Positions 3,301 to 34,380 of a DNA stretch of 64,000 nt are shown one piece after another. The translations under genes were made by a program, and so were the position numbers. The stretch spans positions 9,796,001 to 9,860,000 of the forward strand of contig NC_047066.1 in the NCBI RefSeq assembly GCF_902459465.1. The letters run 5' to 3'. The notes under the pieces were generated by a model. That model saw only the letters and a list, made by a program, of their open reading frames with translations, was not told where the DNA came from and did not search any database. Every line of letters starts with the position of its first letter. The stretch's first letter is position 1. This stretch comes from Asterias rubens. Its lineage: Eukaryota.

Positions 3301-4731
3301 AGATTTTTCTGTCCCATCCCAGCATCATGGTGATCAGAAACACCAAAGCTCGAGTCCGATGCTCTTAACAAATAGGCCACCCAGCACGCCAAGATTCAGT
3401 CAGTGTATGACTAAAGAGTGGCACACAACCTTGCATGTTTTCCGAGAATTAGAATCAGCCGTTGCAAAGAACCGATGTTATCATTAATGCAAGAAATAAT
3501 TAATGGCCTGATGTTTCGACACTAATACAGCTGTTAATGTGTGTTGTATTGTGATTTAGCCTTTTAAAAAGAAAGACTATGCTAGGGTTTACATAACAGG
3601 CCATTTTTTATTTGTTTACCGGGCTTAAGTCATTAGCTTAGCCAGTCAATGTTTGCAAGCCCAACCCTGTGTTGGTACACACTTACTTGGTTGACTCTGT
3701 CAGTGCACCATCTTAAAGGCCCAAGTAGTGAGACTTCCGGCAGAGGCAGCCATGTTGTAATGTCGATGCTTAGCAGAGGCAAAGGAGAAAGAGTCGTCCC
3801 ATCATCATGGTCAGATGTACAATCCATCATGCTGTCACTGTTGATCGTTGGTGAAGAAAGTGTGTCAAATTACTATTTTATCACTTGCGGATAAATATTA
3901 TTCCTTAGCAGCTATTCTGGCACCACTGTGGCTAGTCATGTCTAATGGATTTGGGCTTGTCAAAGACTCGTGTCCAGTCATGCCAGTTGGTGTTTTTGTG
4001 ACCTTGTACATATTTTGTCTTCTTCTATGGTCACCTTGCCAGTTAGTTTAGAATTTTAGCATAGATACTGTTAGAGGCGTTTGTCTCCTGAAAAGGTCAA
4101 AACATTACCGATGCCAGCAGAGATAGGCCTATGTAATAAGTAATTAATTAGTTCTCTGTTGGCGGGACAGACGTATCCCCATACTTTTGTTTGGGCACTG
4201 GCCTGGTGACCAGTCTTTTTTCTTTGTCTTTTTCTTCCACTCTGTGCTTTTTAGTAAGTGTTCTGCGCCTCTGATCATTTTGTATCTAAAGGGCGCATTA
4301 TAAGTTTTAAATATTATTATTATTATTATTTTCCCAAGAGGGATCTGGCCCCCATGCTAAAAATCACTTGCCCCGGGCCTGAGGTCCAGTGTTAACTTTG
4401 AGCCCTTCTCCACGCATTCAAATGTGAAGTGGCCCGCCTTGCCAACAATGACTACTGTACAAATGTACCTCACTAGTTTTCCCCAATACATGCATGATAT
4501 TTGGGCCTTGTAAAAAAACGGATTTTTTTTTATTAATTATAACGTTTTTGGGGACACCAGTGTTTGGAGAAAAAAACTGCCACTTGAACAAGATGGTGAA
4601 GGTGTTTATTACCTGGAAGAGTTTAGCTGTTGCTGTCCTTCGAGATTGCAGTTTCTTGGATGATATGGGTGATGCCGACGCCTTCGATGTTTCTTAAAAT
4701 AGAGACGGCGACGTCTCTGTGATCTAGCCAT
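356..4731 (-). CDS. PRR11: Proline-rich protein 11-like; 3' end not resolved (probably continues past the left edge). Exons: complement(4613..4731, 3687..3837, 2545..2670, 1306..1611, 356..454)
   Basis: Phase-consistent GT-AG exons translate MARSQRRRRLYFKKH..., WLPLPEVSLLGPLRWCTDRV, SLDWMKDTIFPSRVYHREL (cf. human SLEVLKDTIFPSRICHREL), a CNC + poly-Pro exon, and MVTLSDIMNVKLKKV (cf. human ITVKDLLTVKLKK). Family comparisons are from memory of the human protein. Confidence 0.85.
2128..2530 (+). mobile_element. Full-length tRNA-derived SINE (core-domain type) in a PRR11 intron
   Basis: A box TGGCCGAGCAGTTAAG, B box GGTTCGAATCC, core CCTTAAGCAAGACACTT, tail GCGCTATATAAAAG...(TTA)n. Related copies at ~14921-15308 (-) and ~3186-3320 (-). 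Confidence 0.8.
2831..3171. mobile_element. Kolobok-type MITE (AGGCAGTGGACAC family), degenerate right end
   Basis: TTAA followed by AGGCAGTGGACACTATTGG; body shared with copies at 30988, 35270 and elsewhere. Confidence 0.75.
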
Positions 4732-5148
4732 AGGAATCTTCCTTATTCAGATTGGTGGTTTTCAAAGAGTTTGTTGCCTGCAACTGCAAGAGATGAAATC
4801 TGAAGAAAAAAAATGTCAAACTGTGAAATAAAATCAAACTCAAGTTGTACTGTTACTTAAAATGGTCACTAACCACTAAAAAACAAATCACACTAGGGAC
4901 ACTATGAATATATGAACGGAATTTCAGCTTCTCAAAACAGGTAAAAAATAAAGAAAATCGTAGTCAAATTTGTGTTCGCATTGTAAAGAACCTTTATACT
5001 CAGGACGTCAGTGCAGTGGCACTGACTGACGTCCTACCACTCCAGGGCTAGCCATAGTGTTACTATCCACAGGTAACTAAAAAAGGAATTTAGTGCTAGT
5101 GTTACCACTACCACTCAGTGTTATAAATTAATTAATAATACTTTTAGT

Positions 5149-5622
5149 TGGGTCCTACTACTTGCCGTCAACTCGCCGTCAACTCACTAGCGCCGTCAAC
5201 TCGCCGTCAACTCCTCCAATATACATTTAAAATCCACAAAAGAAGCATAGAACTGTAAAGTATCAGCTCAAAGAGAATTTGCGTAATTTTTAGGTCATAT
5301 TTATGAACAAAAATTGAGGTTTTTTTCTCGTGAAAAAATTATATCGAGGCAGCAAAACCGTCGGCCGCCATCTTGCTTTTTCACATTGATTAGTCTTGGC
5401 CCAAGATGTCAATGATTGGTACTTTTTTTTTATCAACACAAAGTCGTTTTTGTGAATGAATTGTTACCGAAAACCATGAGAAATATGTAGTTTAGCCCAG
5501 ACTTAACACTTCCGTGCCCCTTTTATAGATTTTTCATGTAAATTTAATGAGTTGACGGCACGAAAATGAGTTGACGGCGAGTTGACGGCAAGTCGGCGAG
5601 TTGACGGCAAGTAGTAGGACCG
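5149..5622. mobile_element. MITE with TIR GGTCCTACTACTTGCCG and subterminal GCCGTCAACTC repeats
   Basis: Inverted termini 5151 GGTCCTACTACTTGCCG / CGGCAAGTAGTAGGACC 5621; flanking 8-bp direct repeat CTTTTAGT (5141-5148, 5623-5630). Confidence 0.8.
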
Positions 5623-6176
5623 CTTTTAGTGTGTTATTAATCATGTATTAGCCTACCTGTCACACTCACACTCACCACAGACCTTTTTCAGTCCCTTCGG
5701 CTTCACACTCAGTGTCAGTGACTCACTCACACACAGCACAGGGCAGGCTCTACTAGTACCGTGTAGGCAGATCACACTATTTTTCAAAGTTCTGCCAATG
5801 CCTTCAAAGTTTGTCTCATATGTTTTAGCTTGATAAAAGAAACAAAGAACTGAAAAGCAAATTGAAATCCGACATTCGATTCTCTTTTTATGCAAATTTT
5901 TGTTTATTGTTTAAAGCACCTGTTTTAACCATTTACGGGCAAAAAGTGGAAAATGCTTTCTTTTCAGTTTTTCCTTTAAGTTTTCATTGTTTTTTCTCAA
6001 TTTTAAACCCTGTTAGTGTTTCTTTTCTTATAGTACACAGGTCAAACCTACTTGCAAAAGAGAAATGGAGGTTCTATTACATTGAATTTTTTTTTTTACG
6101 GTCACCAAAAATGGCACATTATCCAAAATTCCATAACGGGAAACCCCAAAATGTTCCAAAAATGACTAAGTCCAGC

Positions 6177-6590
6177 TAATTAAATATGCGTGAGGCTCTC
6201 CTGGGGTAACTAAAGTAGTTACAGCTATGAAACTTGGCACAATTCTTGTTTGTGTATAGACATTTTTTTTAAAGTGTATATTTCAAAGTTTTACACGCCA
6301 TTATGCAAATTAGCCTAATTAATTATTCATTTTGTATGCAAAATTACCTAATTAAATATGCGTAAGGCTCTCCTGGGGTAACTAAAGTAGTTACAGCTAT
6401 GAAACTTGGCACAATTCTTGTTTGTGTATAGACATTTTTTTTAAAGTGTATATTTCAAAGTTTTACACGCCATTATGCAAATAAGCCTAATTAATTATTC
6501 ATTTTGTACGCAAAATTACCTTATTAAAAATGCGTGAGACTCTCCTGGGTTAACGCAAGCACCTACAACCATGAAACTTGGCACAATGAA
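6177..6590. repeat. 172-bp tandem repeat (two near-identical units plus a diverged partial third) carrying ATGAAACTTGGCACA
   Basis: Unit starts at 6177, 6349 and 6521. Confidence 0.9.
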
Positions 6591-7267
6591 AGTTTGTTAT
6601 TTTACAGTACATTGTAGTTATTTACATGGTTTCATACATCATTCTGAGAATTCCACACAACTGCAAACCAGACCATTATACTGGTGCATCTCATACAGAG
6701 AATGAGAAACGTCAACAATTTGCAAATAATTATGTCAATTAGCATCTTACATGGTTTTGCAGTAGCACCACGTGTTTATGTGTCTAATAATAAATTTTAT
6801 GAGATGTGATGGTTCTAAAATGAGAGGTTGGTGTTACAACTTGAGCTGATCGTCTTTCTCCTGAAGACAATCAGAGCATATTGATCAAAATGTTGAGTTG
6901 CAAACACCAAGGGTTCTTTTCAGATCCACCACAACTGCAAACCAGATAAACAAAAATATATCTTTCCTTTTCATGAGATTAGATTTATAGTGGGATCATA
7001 TTACCTAAAGTTCATGTACATTTTATACCATTATGTACAACCTCCATATCAAGAAAGTATGTAGATACATAATTTCTTTTCTGAGTGTAGATAATGTTCA
7101 CAACTGACTAATTATTGTGAAATTTTTAAAGAAGAAAAATAAATAAAAAATTGTAAACATGGAGTAAAGTGTACACTATGTTACTTTAAATGCATCATGA
7201 TCACCTTTTATACTGTTGTGTGTAAACTACATGTGCCTTACAGGGAGATGTTGTGTTATAAGATGAT

Positions 7268-10200
7268 TTACATTAAATCTAGTGTGCCCTCATCCCATTC
7301 CTTTTCCAGTGGATAACATAGCATTTCCTGATATGGAGGGTCGTACATAATGGTATAAAATGTGTGCACCCCAATGTATTTTCTATCACCCGGTTCGACC
7401 AATTCATCAATGTCTGCTTCTGTTGCTTTCCTTAGGACAATGGCCTTATACTCGACTAAATCTCCCCCTTTAGACTCTAGGAACATATGGCGTATTCTTT
7501 TTTGGATTATCCGATCCCCTGGAAATGGACCTTTACATCTCTTTTTGGTGGGAGACAACTTGGATAGAAGTTTCTTTTTCAGTTCACTTTTCTGCTGCTC
7601 TTTGTCTATGTGTTCATGTGATGAAGAACTCTGTGAGGTGCCTGCGTCTTCATCTGGGATATCTTGTGTTATTATCTGTTTAATAATATTTCTCAAGTTA
7701 CTTTCCAGCTGATCTACACTTAGTTTCTTTCCTTTGTTGGTGAGATAGAAGAGGTCTTTTTGAACTCCTCCTTTGCTGGCACTCTTCCAATGCTTTATTT
7801 GGGTTGTCAAGGCTTGTTCAAGATCCTTTCCCTTATGTTTGTCTTTCAAATGGTCTACATCTTTTGGGGAGTTGAACAGGATGCCGCAGACCTTCAAAGC
7901 ATTTCCAGTGTTTTCAACTGCTTGTTTCGTAAGGAAGCGCTGTCTGGCTTCCTTTTTTTCTTGATTCATTTTCAATTTATCAGCAACAGTTTTTTTTATT
8001 GCAGCACTCTTGCGCTGATATAATTTAAAAAATGAGCTTCGATGCTTGCGCGCATCACCTAGGAATTTATTTCTTGTGTCCTCATCCATATCATCTAGGT
8101 ATTCTCTCGTCTTATTCAAGCTCCAGAGGAGAATGCCTTCAAAGGCCACTGTATTGGCATTAGGCATCTTACGCCTAAGATAATCGCAAACATGCATCGA
8201 GACCTGCAAACATACGCTCAGGAGCAAGATTGTCCTTAGGGCAGGTAAATGTTTCTTCTCTGAGATCAGTAGCGTTGTAAAACCTTCCCCCTGGAAGATG
8301 ATCAGCGACCTGACGACTGATGCACACATGAAGATTGTGCATTATCACAGAGAGTGCTTGCTTGGTCAGGTTTTCAATGTTACCTGTTGTTCGTTCATAT
8401 AGGGACGTGTGGATTTCATTCTTTACTGGTGGGAATTCTGGAAACAGGATAGTACTGTCATTGACGAGTGGGGAGGGGTCTATCATCCACTCTTGGACTT
8501 TCTGGTGCAGCCTGGTATAGAATTTGTCTGTGTCGAGTACATGGAGATTACTTTGAACCATCTGCATTAGTGGAGTCGTTATATGCTGGGATATAATCCC
8601 CATTGCTCTCATCCCTGCCAGTATTATTTCATCCTGCAGGTCTAGTTTGAGACATTTAACAAACATGTTTTCCTCGCGCTTGGAGTCGAGAGATGAGCAC
8701 AGCGTGTTGAAATGTTCTCTATGGTGGAACACCGCAGCAGAATTCTGGAATGGGATGTTGAAACGATTCCCTCGGTATGATTGAAGATGTGATTTGCATT
8801 GATGATGTGTTTTCAATACAGATTTGAAATCTTCAACCATGCCGGATTGTTCATCACATTCTGGTCCTAATAAATTACAGAATGAACGGACAGTAAGTAT
8901 TGTTGCACTCTCCTTTCCCCTACTCCACAGCATTTTGTTTTCCCTCCCCAGTTTTCCATCATCTGCCTCGATACGTTCCCACTCGTACAGTGCAGAGGCA
9001 GCATACTCTTGAAGATTAAGAACTAAGTGCTTTCCGCAGAAAAGATCATTGATGGTGCTAAGTTGATGTTTGACATCATCATCAATCTCTTCCCAATTGT
9101 CAGTCACCTGTGGTAGTGCAGCAGCTCTCCATTTTTCTAGTGTTGTGATGTAAGCCTTATTTACGATGCATCGGTCAGTCATTGTGTTCTTTATTTTGGC
9201 TAAAAGTTTAAGGGTTTGCTTTGGGTCGTCCTTTATGTTCAGCATGATCAACTCGTCCAGTGTGTCCTTCGTCTCTTCAAGTAAGCTCTCTGCGCTTTCA
9301 GTGTGGATGTCATGAAGGCTCATGCCAACAGTCCCCGCATCTGTGGAAGCTAAAAAAGTTGTATATCCCTTCCTCTTCTTGGTTGGAACTCTGTAAGATG
9401 TTTCCAGAAAATTCTTAAGTGGGTCATGTCGTAGTTTCTGTCGCTTTAGAGCCAAGTTGTGCCAGTTAGTCTGGATAGTGCCAATTGGTGGAGGACTGAA
9501 ATCTGCTGAAAACAGATTTGGCCACCATGTGTCCCGAACAGTTTGCCAGGTTGTGTTTGAAGTCTCCCGGAACCAATTTAGTTCAATGATCATTGCATTG
9601 TTGAGGTTTTGTGCACTTAAGTCTGTTGAATGAAGTAGCGAGTCTGGTGTTAATCTGCTCTTTTCACAGTGTGGTCCAATGGTGTGCTTGTAGTGTTTTG
9701 CAAATTCAGGCACTTCTTGGAGGAGGTCTACTGTGGTGTGGGTTCGTTTTGATTTGGCTACATGTCGTTGTACTTTTTGGAGTAGTCCATTTAAGTTGGT
9801 ACTGGTAGGCAAGTTGAGGTTGAGGGCAGAAAATATTGGTGGGAAATCACGTTTGTAGCTTTTGGTGGTCGAGTGCTCAATACGATATCTGATTGTCTCC
9901 AACAACGCTGTGGTCAGAATTCCATTCCAATGATCTGGTGAAAAGAAAAAAAACATGAAAAAAAAAAAAATAAAAATAAATTACATTTTTTGTTTGGGGC
10001 ATATTTTCTCTTTCCGTGACAGTTAAAAATAGTGAATGAAAGAGGCACATTCAAAAGGGTTAAATTAATTTTGTTAGGAATATGTAGCCACTTTCCATCA
10101 CAGAGCTTTATCAATCCATAGAGCAATAAACTAGACTCCATGATCAATCTGAATCAAAACTTTGCAAAATGTAAACAAGCCGACAAACTATTCCCACGAC

Positions 10201-10780
10201 CATACGGAGTACCAGCAATAAATGGAACAGCCTTGATCAAGACAATAGCGACATCCGGTTGGTCAACCGCTTGATAAATGTGTCACGTGACTTTTTTTTT
10301 AGACGTTACGTTCACTGTACACCCGCCCTGAATTACTCATTTCTCTTAACTTTCCGAACTTTACTCTCTGATTTTACACAACAAATCTACACAGAGGGTA
10401 ATTTTATAACGATATTATTAAAATATATTATCTTGAAAATTGAGGAAAGTATTTATTTCTTACCTGGAACGCTGTATTCCGTAAGCAACAGGTCAATTTC
10501 GTCTGATGTCCAGCCAGAGATATGTTCAACTTCACACGCGAACGCTTGGTCATTGAACTCAACTGCTGCCGGAGGCTCTGAATTGACAAAACAAACATGT
10601 CCTATTTTAGAGCGCTATTACTGAGAGCAACGGATAACGAAATTCAACAATCTGCACATCATAACAAACTTTAGAATGTCTATTTTCATATTCTAATATA
10701 GAAGTATTCATATTTGAGATATATAGGGAAAAAACGGGTGGCTTACCTGCTCGCCGTTTCCCGCTTCTACTGGCCGCCAT
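7268..10780 (-). pseudogene. Intron-containing hAT-like (CxxH) DDE transposase with C-terminal Spin/Ssty Tudor-like domain; frameshifted. Exons: complement(10747..10780, 10464..10577, 7268..9934)
   Basis: aaaATGGCGG start and canonical splice sites. Motifs KNTMTDR (D, 9174-9176), FCGKHLVLNL (9027-9038) and DNLAPERMFAGLD (E, 8217-8219). Removing a 13-bp insertion (8183-8195) fuses the 593- and 353-aa ORFs into 2802 nt (933 aa + stop). No TIRs found. Confidence 0.75.
10117..10142. mobile_element. P-superfamily-like excision footprint (asymmetric) with 7-bp TSD ATCAATC
   Basis: ATCAATC-CATAGAGCAATAAACTAGACTCCATG-ATCAATC (TSD 10110-10116 and 10143-10149). Confidence 0.7.
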
Positions 10781-11554
10781 TTTGGAAATTTCGAGAACGT
10801 ACGCATATCTCTGGAGCAGAGTTTCCCCATCCTAAAAATAGCTTCACAGGGTCCCTACGTCACCGACTCACTCCAGAATCGTCCATTATAGAAGAGAATA
10901 GGGGGGATTAAGCTGCGAGGTGGTATTTTTTCCCCTCCCACGCGCCGTCGCTGCGCGCCGGACCGACAAACTAAGTAACCCAAAACTACTGTAAAATCTA
11001 TATTTCTTGACCAATTTGGATCAAATGAGCAGACAAACACAGGGGAAGTCTATATTTTTTAGTAATGTAATTGTTTTCTTTATTGAATTATCCAATTCTC
11101 CCTTAAACGACTTTGATCTGTACCAATCTTTTCACATTCGACCGTGCCGACCGTTGTACGTGTGAGAATATGCACGGTCGGCTGAAATGTTTACGTGCAG
11201 AGTACATGTACTAATACTCCTACTACGTACTCACTAGTTTTTTTAGTACTACTCTTTTTTTTTAAGTCAAACTCTAAGTCTAAACTAATCTAAAAAGATT
11301 CAAAATCCACTGCATGAGCCATTTATTGTTAGACCTAGTAAGGACTGTAAGACTAGAGCCTCTGTCTCAAAGTCAAACCGTTTGTATTTATTAAATTTTA
11401 ATAAGGCTGAGCACACCCATTGACACAGTGGTGACTGACTCAACTGCTGACTTCATTGATTAACAATACAACATTGAAATTTGTCAACTTCAAAAACGGC
11501 CCGTTTTTAAATTGCTTATTTTGACTATTATTCAGGGAGTGATATTAAACATAC

Positions 11555-33518: not shown

Positions 33519-33838
33519 CATTCTTAGAAACAATTGTGTGAACAAAAATCAGTTTTAAAAATCGATTTGGTTGTAATTAGACGATAGGAAAAAGTTGTGG
33601 GTGTAAAAGACATCATTGGATACCGGTATACCATTTTATCATGTCTGTTATAAAGGCAAAGTATATTGGTTTTTTGAACCGCGTTGGATTGTTTTAATCA
33701 AATGTATAAAATCAAACTAACATGTGCAAATTTCATTTCAAAAGGTGGACACGCTTTTGAAATATTGCTGAAATTCAGAAATTCAGAAATTCAGTCCATG
33801 CAGGAAGGTTAATCCGTAAACGGAATACACTATCTGAG

Positions 33839-33870
33839 CATGGAGCAATAAACTAGTTTATTGCTCCATG
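33839..33870. mobile_element. Perfect 32-bp palindrome with 7-bp TSD: P-superfamily-like excision footprint
   Basis: ATCTGAG-CATGGAGCAATAAACTAGTTTATTGCTCCATG-ATCTGAG (TSD 33832-33838 and 33871-33877). Confidence 0.8.
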
Positions 33871-34380
33871 ATCTGAGTAACTTTACTCCCAGTACGCTTC
33901 TAAGATTCAAACTTTTTGGGCATAAAAACGGATATCTTTTTACATAACCGCATAACTTTGAAGTGAATGTTTTCTCAAAATGCTTTAAACCACCGTAAGC
34001 TGCAGTAGGCTTCTAACCCCAAAATTGTAATGCCATTTATTAAGAGTGATTACCAAATGTATACCTTCACTTAACAATGTTTTTAAAGCAAAAAATTGTG
34101 AATTTGCAGCAACACCAAAACAATAAGAATTTTTACTGTAGGATGTAATGGTTTTGATTAATATACATGCTTTAACCATGTTATATGAAACATTATCATG
34201 TTAACAAAATAGCGACCGAGCCTGGACTTAATGAAGTCATGATTTGTACACGGCCCAGTGGAAGAAAACCATAATAAATCTTGTATTTTATAGAGATTGC
34301 ACCGTCTGGTATTTAGCAACTTTTGGTTGAAGAAAGGGTGCACAATCTCAAAATTTCTTCTTTTTCTATTTAATTATTAA

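Follow-up and report, generated by a model that had tools for sequence, protein, structure and literature searches.

Window positions 5764-11203 on the minus strand of a 64,000-nucleotide stretch of the starfish Asterias rubens (NCBI RefSeq assembly GCF_902459465.1, contig NC_047066.1, positions 9,796,001 to 9,860,000; "the window" below means this whole stretch) are best explained as a defective copy of a cut-and-paste transposon whose transposase ends in one Spindlin-type Tudor-like barrel, a reading to which we give a probability of about 0.72. An earlier sequence-only reading, made without database searches, had called this protein a DDE transposase with a C-terminal Spin/Ssty domain. The peptide it quoted, IIQKRIRHMF...EKEWDEGTLDLM followed by a stop (80 residues), is the exact translation of 7268-7510 on the minus strand; the plus strand across the same interval has many stops. 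The peptide is the C-terminal end of a 353-codon open reading frame (ORF) at 7268-8329(-), which overlaps, in a different frame, a 593-codon ORF at 8175-9956(-). The closest database protein is Asterias rubens LOC117305613, with 98% identity.

To characterize the C-terminal domain (88 residues, 7271-7534, minus strand), homologous domains were gathered by an exhaustive profile search, which returned 30 proteins at E values up to 1e-3, and 23 domain sequences chosen from these proteins were aligned (alignment A3). A word-indexed search with the domain of protein P0003 added only P0016. Two proteins returned by the domain search, P0043 and P0044 (a repeat protein and an NLR), match only the acidic helical insertion described below and were rejected as spurious. 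When the A3 profile was compared with PDB sequences, the top 17 distinct matches were Spindlin-1, -2, -3 and -4 (E 1e-5 to 2.4e-3) and the first non-spindlin match appeared at E 0.12. The profile aligns both halves of the repeat, flanking a family-specific insertion.

AlphaFold2 (AF2), given A3, produced a confident barrel model of the window's 88 residues, with a predicted local distance difference test score (pLDDT) of 93.5 and a predicted template modelling score (pTM) of 0.83. The model has five strands and a short helix ahead of the last strand, with a two-helix insertion (residues 39-53; about 20 residues, acidic and specific to the family) between strands 2 and 3, and it can be superposed on a spindlin repeat as a Tudor-like barrel with one strand in addition to the four of the core. 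Spindlins occupied ranks 1-44 of the Foldseek search against the PDB (probability 1.0, template modelling score (TM) by query 0.57-0.65, 24-27% identity), while in Swiss-Prot models ranks 1-16 were Spindlin-1 to -4, Spindlin-W/Z and mouse Ssty1, matched at the second repeat. The best structural match outside the spindlins was a Tudor that reads H3K4me1. By profile and model, then, the C-terminus is a Spindlin-type Tudor-like barrel nearest to SPIN1 repeat 2, with a likeness beyond chance, and the assignment first made by eye has held up.

Single sequences gave a different result from the profile. Neither window ORF, nor the last 80 residues, had a Pfam match, and phmmer of the single sequence against PDB sequences found nothing. 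The A3 members taken one at a time against Pfam gave weak Spin-Ssty matches in 3 of 23 cases (best E 0.057) and weak Agenet matches in 2 of 23. The spindlin likeness could on this account be a generic SH3-like/Tudor barrel similarity, or convergence, with no Spin/Ssty homology: the Pfam Spin-Ssty threshold is never met, weak matches occur also to Agenet, PTM_DIR17_Tudor, Tudor_5 and Tudor_KDM3B, and the Foldseek E-values are modest (6e-4 and weaker). Set beside the uninterrupted run of spindlins at the top of the profile and structure searches, this explanation is very improbable. The spindlin arrangement of three packed tandem repeats is absent; the one repeat sits at the very end of the protein, and the 250 residues upstream of the barrel are helical or of low complexity, with no additional spindlin match. 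Between the window and the brittle star copy described next, the domain has a proportion of nonsynonymous differences (pN) of 0.107 and of synonymous differences (pS) of 0.83 (saturated), which indicates long purifying selection on the domain.

Full-length relatives of the protein were found in the brittle star Amphiura filiformis (P0016, 1197 amino acids), in the sea urchin Lytechinus variegatus (P0002) and in environmental assemblies (P0003, 1037 amino acids, and P0006, 934 amino acids). The full-length protein is about 1200 residues long and consists, in order, of an N-terminal region, a coiled coil, a helix-turn-helix (HTH)-like segment, the core, a helical linker and the barrel. The core begins with DGT(T/S)KK, followed by NTMTDR, CGKH-x-LNL, YRGNRFN, DHLPGG and ERMFAGLD. 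In an alignment of 20 sequences (24-60% identity), D495, D567, C613 and H616 (P0016 numbering) are invariant and E887 is conserved in at least 90%. The order D, D, C-x2-H, E is the expected signature of hAT/P-type RNase-H transposases and is not exclusive to hAT; CGKHLVLNL and ERMF, judged by eye, resemble the hAT C-x-x-H-x-L-N-L and S-E-R-x-F-S blocks. The motifs thus identify the host protein as a predicted RNase-H-type (D, D, C-x2-H, E) transposase. Its fusion to the Spin-like domain, proposed at the outset, is confirmed by a shared ORF here and in P0016, P0003 and P0006, where barrel and transposase-like protein are encoded together. A more distant branch, about 30% identical in the core, comprises P0048, P0050, P0051, P0053, P0054 and the Mytilus edulis protein P0066; the C-termini of P0048-P0054 have a barrel of canonical length without the helical insertion, and the Mytilus protein has only weak Tudor-type matches (Tudor_KDM3B, Tudor_5). 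These comparisons argue that the fusion is old and has been retained across echinoderm classes and in relatives of about 30% identity.

The evidence on the superfamily of this transposase points in more than one direction. The label hAT-like fits the motifs rather than a demonstrated membership, and the D...D...C-x2-H...(E) pattern together with 12-bp terminal inverted repeats (TIRs) in sister copies agrees with it. The hAT Pfam models (Dimer_Tnp_hAT and hAT RNase-H-like) had no match in the window ORFs or the 20 full-length relatives at E up to 1, similarity to Hermes stayed at noise level, and the one clean target-site duplication is 7 bp, not 8, a length that would fit P-like elements better than hAT. 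A corresponding test for P-element/THAP9 (TNP-like RNase H and GTP-binding insertion domains, N-terminal THAP finger) also found no Pfam match in the window ORFs or the 20 relatives, among which the only recurrent weak Pfam matches are to Tudor-type models. Pfam gave nothing informative for the N-terminal regions. In the Atlas the 353-residue ORF fell into clusters without names only. By language-model features, which we treat as a lead and not as evidence, the nearest clusters are nameless (commonest taxa Basidiomycota and Mollusca), followed by P-element/THAP9 clusters (0.75) and then by DUF659 and FAM200/ZBED5 hAT-type clusters (0.71-0.72), so that this measure lies slightly closer to P-element/THAP9 than to hAT. 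In structure, the Atlas cluster nearest by these features has hAT families as its neighbours (TM 0.44-0.69). A Mutator match (PF20700) in P0087 was discarded because that ORF is chimeric, its Mutator part (2-116) and family part (117-192) being non-overlapping.

The evidence that the protein belongs to a mobile element comes from comparison of copies. A second A. rubens locus (L001, on the unplaced scaffold CABPRM030000001.1) is 98% identical to the window copy and unrelated to it past both limits, and these sharp limits of homology define the retained transposon body (5764-11203, minus strand, 5.44 kb). Exactly at these limits L001 has perfect 12-bp inverted termini, TAGGCAGATCAC...GTGATCTGCCTA, and perfect 12-bp TIRs occur in run contigs as well. 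The window copy retains the 3' TIR as the last 12 bp of the element, 5764-5775, reading TAGGCAGATCAC on the plus strand; this is the sole match in the window, and the same 12-mer, inverted, bounds L001. Contigs of other copies diverge into different flanks from 5764. At the opposite end, the last 5' bases common to other copies are 11194-11203 (minus strand), after which the window continues into unrelated sequence and contigs have loose ends at 11203; the other copies (public-run contigs and L001) continue past 11203 with GATCTGCCTA and then with three different flanks. One contig flank pair has an exact 7-bp duplication, TTATAAA, and the L001 flanks match at 6 of 7 positions with a 2-bp offset. 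A further copy, also 98% identical, is present in an environmental contig (L002), and clusters in other taxa have up to 111 members; the word depths of run contigs are not read as copy numbers. A search for TIRs around the Amphiura copy found no convincing termini. Taken together, the TIRs, varied flanks, 7-bp duplication, deletion forms, L002 copy and cluster sizes indicate a mobile cut-and-paste element.

Several further observations concern the structure of the element and its surroundings. Run contigs join 6718 to 9696 and so lack 2977 bp, among them the Spin-like domain and the greater part of the ORF; the joint occurs in three runs, including a second organism code, and marks a non-autonomous form of this element that arose by deletion. 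The 3' non-coding part contains subterminal repeats of about 68 bp (6176-6243, 6348-6415 and 6520-6587; two direct and one inverted), which may be transposase-binding sites. A MITE-like (miniature inverted-repeat transposable element) palindromic element at 5131-5641 adjoins the transposon 3' end from outside; its arms reach 69 nt, it contains GCCGTCAACTC motifs in tandem, and its word depth in run X11 is very high. A candidate related end at 33832-33877 was rejected: it is a 32-bp palindrome, CATGGAGCAATAAAC..., with a flanking ATCTGAG duplication and termini unlike TAGGCAGATCAC, and is a footprint or miniature of another element family.

The gene within the element was reconstructed on the minus strand from relatives and run contigs. 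Coding exon 1 (10747-10780; MAASRSGKRRA..., start codon at 10780) matches the P0016 N-terminus and is joined from 10747 to 10577 in RNA-type contigs. Intron 1 (10578-10746; 169 nt, GT..AG) is supported by a joint skipping 169, seen as CT..AC, in runs X1 and X3. Coding exon 2 (10464-10577) was located by tblastn with P0016 residues 9-48 and by reading its donor and acceptor, and X4 contig record 30 spans 10464-10579. Intron 2 (9935-10463; 529 nt, GT/AG) has zero X1 depth over 10031-10424, and X1 contig 8 ends at 9934. Exon 3 is read in two frames. The first (8175-9934) encodes the N-terminal region and a truncated transposase core up to a premature stop at 8175-8177; by ORF and BLASTP its product is 81% identical to P0016 over residues 498-898 and 44% identical over 45-233, and by alignment with the relatives it includes the second catalytic D (9174-9176), the C-x2-H (9027-9038) and the catalytic E (8217-8219). 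The second frame (7268-8186) encodes the C-terminal third, including the Spin-like domain, to the stop at 7268-7270, with 70% identity to P0016 894-1197. In run X1, intron 1 is spliced out, the exons are covered, and depth is zero in intron 2 and upstream of about 10819. The element is transcribed and spliced, as seen in the GT-AG joints and the intron-free X1 depth.

Two features of the transcript are noted in addition. A stretch of about 40 nt in the 3' untranslated region, 7018-7056, is the reverse complement of 7324-7363 inside the Spin-like coding sequence, a pair also kept in L001 and L002. The predicted long-range stem in the mRNA has about 45 bp, a minimum free energy of -98.4 kcal/mol and a z of -4.9, and may act as a regulatory hairpin or trigger small RNAs. 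At the 3' side, an X1 contig runs from the element interior past the 3' end at 5764 into 88 nt of flank and is then spliced from 5676 to 4799 with a minus-strand GT-AG. The splice target, 4609-4799, is the first coding exon of a neighbouring minus-strand gene, with an ATG at 4731 and the sequence MARSQRRRRLYFKK... The minus-strand transcript across 5676-5763 is a read-through or chimeric transposon-host transcript.

The window copy is dead, having an 807-bp internal deletion, a private 13-bp frameshift and no 5' TIR. The in-frame deletion junction lies at 9381-9383 (minus strand), where L001 and L002 have 807/810 extra bp and run contigs break at 9381/9383. Translated in frame from L001, the missing 807 bp correspond to P0016 residues ~234-497, and their loss takes out the coiled coil, the HTH-like region and the first catalytic D (in the ...VDGTT... 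motif). The 13-bp insertion (placement ambiguous within 8183-8199, minus strand) is found neither in L001 and L002 nor in contigs from any of the four runs. It causes a frameshift that separates ...PERMFAGLD from DYLRRK..., so that the first ORF ends at 8175 and its translation does not extend into the barrel. The 5' TIR is absent from this copy and the window holds no second TIR match. NCBI model LOC117305613 treats the 807-bp coding stretch as an intron, and its annotated 446-residue protein is an artefact of a broken copy.

The other close copies are damaged differently. L001 (at 12124) and L002 (at 2466) share a frame-breaking 17-bp deletion ahead of ...PERMF, equivalent to window 8260-8276 and lying 60 bp upstream of the 13-bp insertion of the window copy. 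Contigs of all four runs are without the 13-bp insertion and with the 17 bp, so a third type of copy, in frame at both sites, exists. Between the close copies, 12 nonsynonymous changes and 1 synonymous change were counted over the C-terminal third, a pattern consistent with relaxed or neutral decay in which the counts are too few for a test.

We also considered that the locus is a decaying, immobile paralogue of a domesticated host gene, a chromatin protein derived from a transposase. The conserved 5' intron/exon layout with observed splicing would suit such a gene, as would the strong purifying selection between starfish and brittle star at saturated synonymous sites, and two sea-urchin proteins, XP_001200676 and XP_041470538, have both ends of the transposon protein and no core. 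Such a gene would not be expected to have perfect 12-bp TIRs precisely where homology between copies ends, no fewer than four distinct flanking contexts, a 7-bp flanking duplication at one copy, independent internal-deletion derivatives or clusters of up to 111 members in other taxa. Its copies at 98% identity would also have to differ by frame-breaking indels and by the 12 to 1 excess of nonsynonymous changes (few counts). We consider a host gene a very unlikely explanation and retain the defective transposon copy as the preferred one. Recent horizontal transfer between starfish and brittle star, suggested by the 81% protein identity, was ruled out by the saturated pS of 0.83.

The two sea-urchin proteins are of interest in their own right. 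P0046 (S. purpuratus XP_001200676) and P0042 (L. variegatus XP_041470538), 1161-1255 amino acids long, share the N-terminal region (E 2e-6) and the C-terminal Spin-like domain (E 3e-6) of the transposon protein, with a long acidic/basic low-complexity stretch in the middle replacing the transposase core. They could be a domesticated derivative of the element or the donor of its modules.

The function of the barrel was assessed from the residues that SPIN1 uses to bind the H3 tail. The H3K4me3 cage of SPIN1 consists of F141, W151, Y170 and Y177; single alanine mutants of F141, Y170 or Y177 lower affinity 80- to >800-fold, with a loss of 80-fold or more for Y177A, and E142 and D189 hold the H3 A1 amine while D184 holds H3 R2 (Su et al. 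2014, PMC3967050). With equivalences taken from HMMER alignments and SPIN1 residue numbers as in that paper, the window cage reads F141 to F18, W151 to Y29, Y170 to Y64 and Y177 to L72, so the count of three aromatic positions and a leucine made by eye was correct. The acidic contacts read E142 to L19, D189 to T84 and D184 to E79. Over the family, aromatic residues occupy position 18 in 14 of 23 domains (Cys in 9), position 29 in 19/23, position 64 in 22/23, and position 72 in 13/22 (non-aromatic in 9/22). The number of aromatic cage positions per member ranges from two to four, with all four in P0003, P0024, P0025, P0026 and P0039. An acidic residue stands at the D184 equivalent in 21 of 22 domains, and the E142 and D189 equivalents are mostly non-acidic in the window's branch. 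The fold is conserved and a pocket is plausible from these alignments; given the F/Y/Y/L cage and the only partly kept contacts to the H3 N-terminus, SPIN1-style H3K4me3 binding is not to be assumed.

In active copies the barrel might act as a tether between the transposase (or the transpososome) and a methylated protein of chromatin, either a histone tail or another one, and such tethering would bias the integration sites of the element in the manner of chromodomains on chromoviral integrases. By analogy with those systems we regard this as a tentative proposal, somewhat short of an even chance. Alternatively, the Spin-like fold may be real and not read histone methyl-lysine at all, serving instead in oligomerisation, in docking of a host factor (compare SPIN1-SPINDOC) or in binding methylated non-histone proteins or nucleic acid, with no choice of target site. 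The variability of the cage (Cys at position 18 and non-aromatic residues at position 72 in nine domains each; two aromatic positions in P0016), the mostly non-acidic E142/D189 equivalents, the acidic, family-specific two-helix insertion flanking the barrel and the single repeat, where spindlin pockets are built partly between repeats (PMC3967050), are as such a protein would have them. Three aromatic cage positions in most members, the nearly invariant acidic D184 equivalent and an H3K4me1 reader as top non-spindlin structural match speak for reading. Single Tudor and chromo barrels with two or three aromatic residues are, moreover, known readers. On balance a non-reading barrel seems unlikely, if worth serious attention, and we keep tethering as the working proposal for active copies.

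The sequence-only reading had placed this copy within about 1 kb of a putative PRR11/SPNS1 bidirectional promoter, which holds roughly for the 3' end of the element and not for the domain. The element 3' end lies 88 nt from the spliced 5' exon of the neighbouring minus-strand gene, and splicing from the element flank into the exon with the ATG at 4731 places the element in the 5' region of that gene. The Spin-like domain itself lies 1.6 kb from the spliced 5' exon, and its distance to the start codon of the putative SPNS1 gene is 6.2 kb (Pfam was uninformative on the putative SPNS1 first exon); 2.5 kb separate the other end of the element from what is putatively the first coding exon (13678) of a divergent plus-strand gene. 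L001 has no called gene within about 8-10 kb, and the Amphiura copy is inside an intron of an opposite-strand gene. With just three insertion contexts, nothing can be said about targeting.

Several results weigh against the overall interpretation. No Pfam transposase domain was found in the window ORFs or the 20 full-length relatives. The AF2 model of the core (10 sequences) is poor (pLDDT 59.7), its matches to Hermes are within noise, Foldseek, VIA and Atlas shape searches with it gave no decisive match, and a core profile against PDB sequences gave no Hermes and noise only (APC2); the catalytic fold is consequently inferred from motifs and from an indirect Atlas neighbour. No family member reaches the Pfam Spin-Ssty (PF02513) cut-off of 25 bits, the best score in the wider family being 18.5 bits (P0050, E 0.0018). 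A spindlin has three integrated repeats, compared with one repeat plus an insertion here, the window cage is incomplete, with L at the Y177 position, and the intact Amphiura protein P0016 has two aromatic cage positions only. The types of runs X1 and X4 were guessed ('RNA?'), the X1 pattern being that expected of RNA. Finally, one of the three insertion contexts, that of the window copy, is beside a 5' exon, which is no evidence of promoter preference.

A broader interpretation joins these elements. There may be an old lineage, invisible to Pfam, that spans echinoderms and relatives of about 30% identity including Mytilus, that chooses its sites through a Spindlin-type tether, that represents either a deep branch within hAT/P or a separate superfamily, and that has swapped N-terminal and Spin-like modules with the host genes XP_001200676 and XP_041470538. 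As a whole this combination is doubtful; if true, it would tie the history of the Spin/Ssty repeat to mobile DNA.

Reader domains on mobile-element recombinases are the clearest natural cases of chromatin-guided integration and have so far been essentially chromodomains on integrases of long terminal repeat (LTR) retrotransposons, with a few Chromo/PHD fusions. With a Spindlin-type Tudor carried by a DNA transposase, this picture would gain a new class of reader, a new class of transposon and a compact natural module (about 65-90 residues) for asking if a histone mark can steer a cut-and-paste enzyme. The conserved fusion makes reader-guided insertion open to test. The dead window copy has little practical value and is chiefly a pointer to the family, at which level the interest lies. 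Because Pfam recognises neither the core nor the Tudor, surveys based on domains would miss such fusions.

Compared with known systems, the barrel differs from SPIN1 repeat 2 in being one repeat rather than one of three integrated repeats, in its two-helix insertion of about 20 residues, and in the changes Y177 to L, D189 to T and E142 to L; it is attached to a transposase, whereas SPIN1 stands alone, and falls below the Pfam Spin-Ssty threshold. The predicted transposase resembles hAT (Hermes, Ac) and P-element/THAP9 in the order and spacing of D, D, C-x2-H and E, in short TIRs and, as far as the poor model suggests, in a long all-helical insertion before the E. The Ty3/gypsy chromoviruses (MAGGY) share with it the arrangement of a recombinase with a C-terminal methyl-lysine-reader fold of the Royal family; theirs is an LTR integrase with a chromodomain and targeting shown experimentally, and here the sequence predicts a DNA transposase with a Spindlin-type Tudor. 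A preprint cites the tethering of integration to H3K9me chromatin by chromodomain integrases of chromoviruses, and the same preprint gives hAT fusions to Chromo (CBX/CDY) in the sponge Ephydatia and PHD fusions in cnidarians (bioRxiv 10.1101/2021.11.30.470311). A 2025 paper describes Gypsy-10_Ec32 of Ectocarpus with a C-terminal Tudor, to its authors' knowledge the first transposable element so reported (PMC12477816). Full-text literature searching brought up no DNA transposase described as bearing a Spindlin/Tudor domain. The sponge, cnidarian and Ectocarpus fusions resemble the present one as captures of a chromatin-reader domain by a transposable element, and none of them is a Spindlin-type domain on a DNA transposase. 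The element described here is of a known kind, a reader domain on a mobile-element recombinase, and what appears new is a Spindlin-type reader on a DNA transposase.

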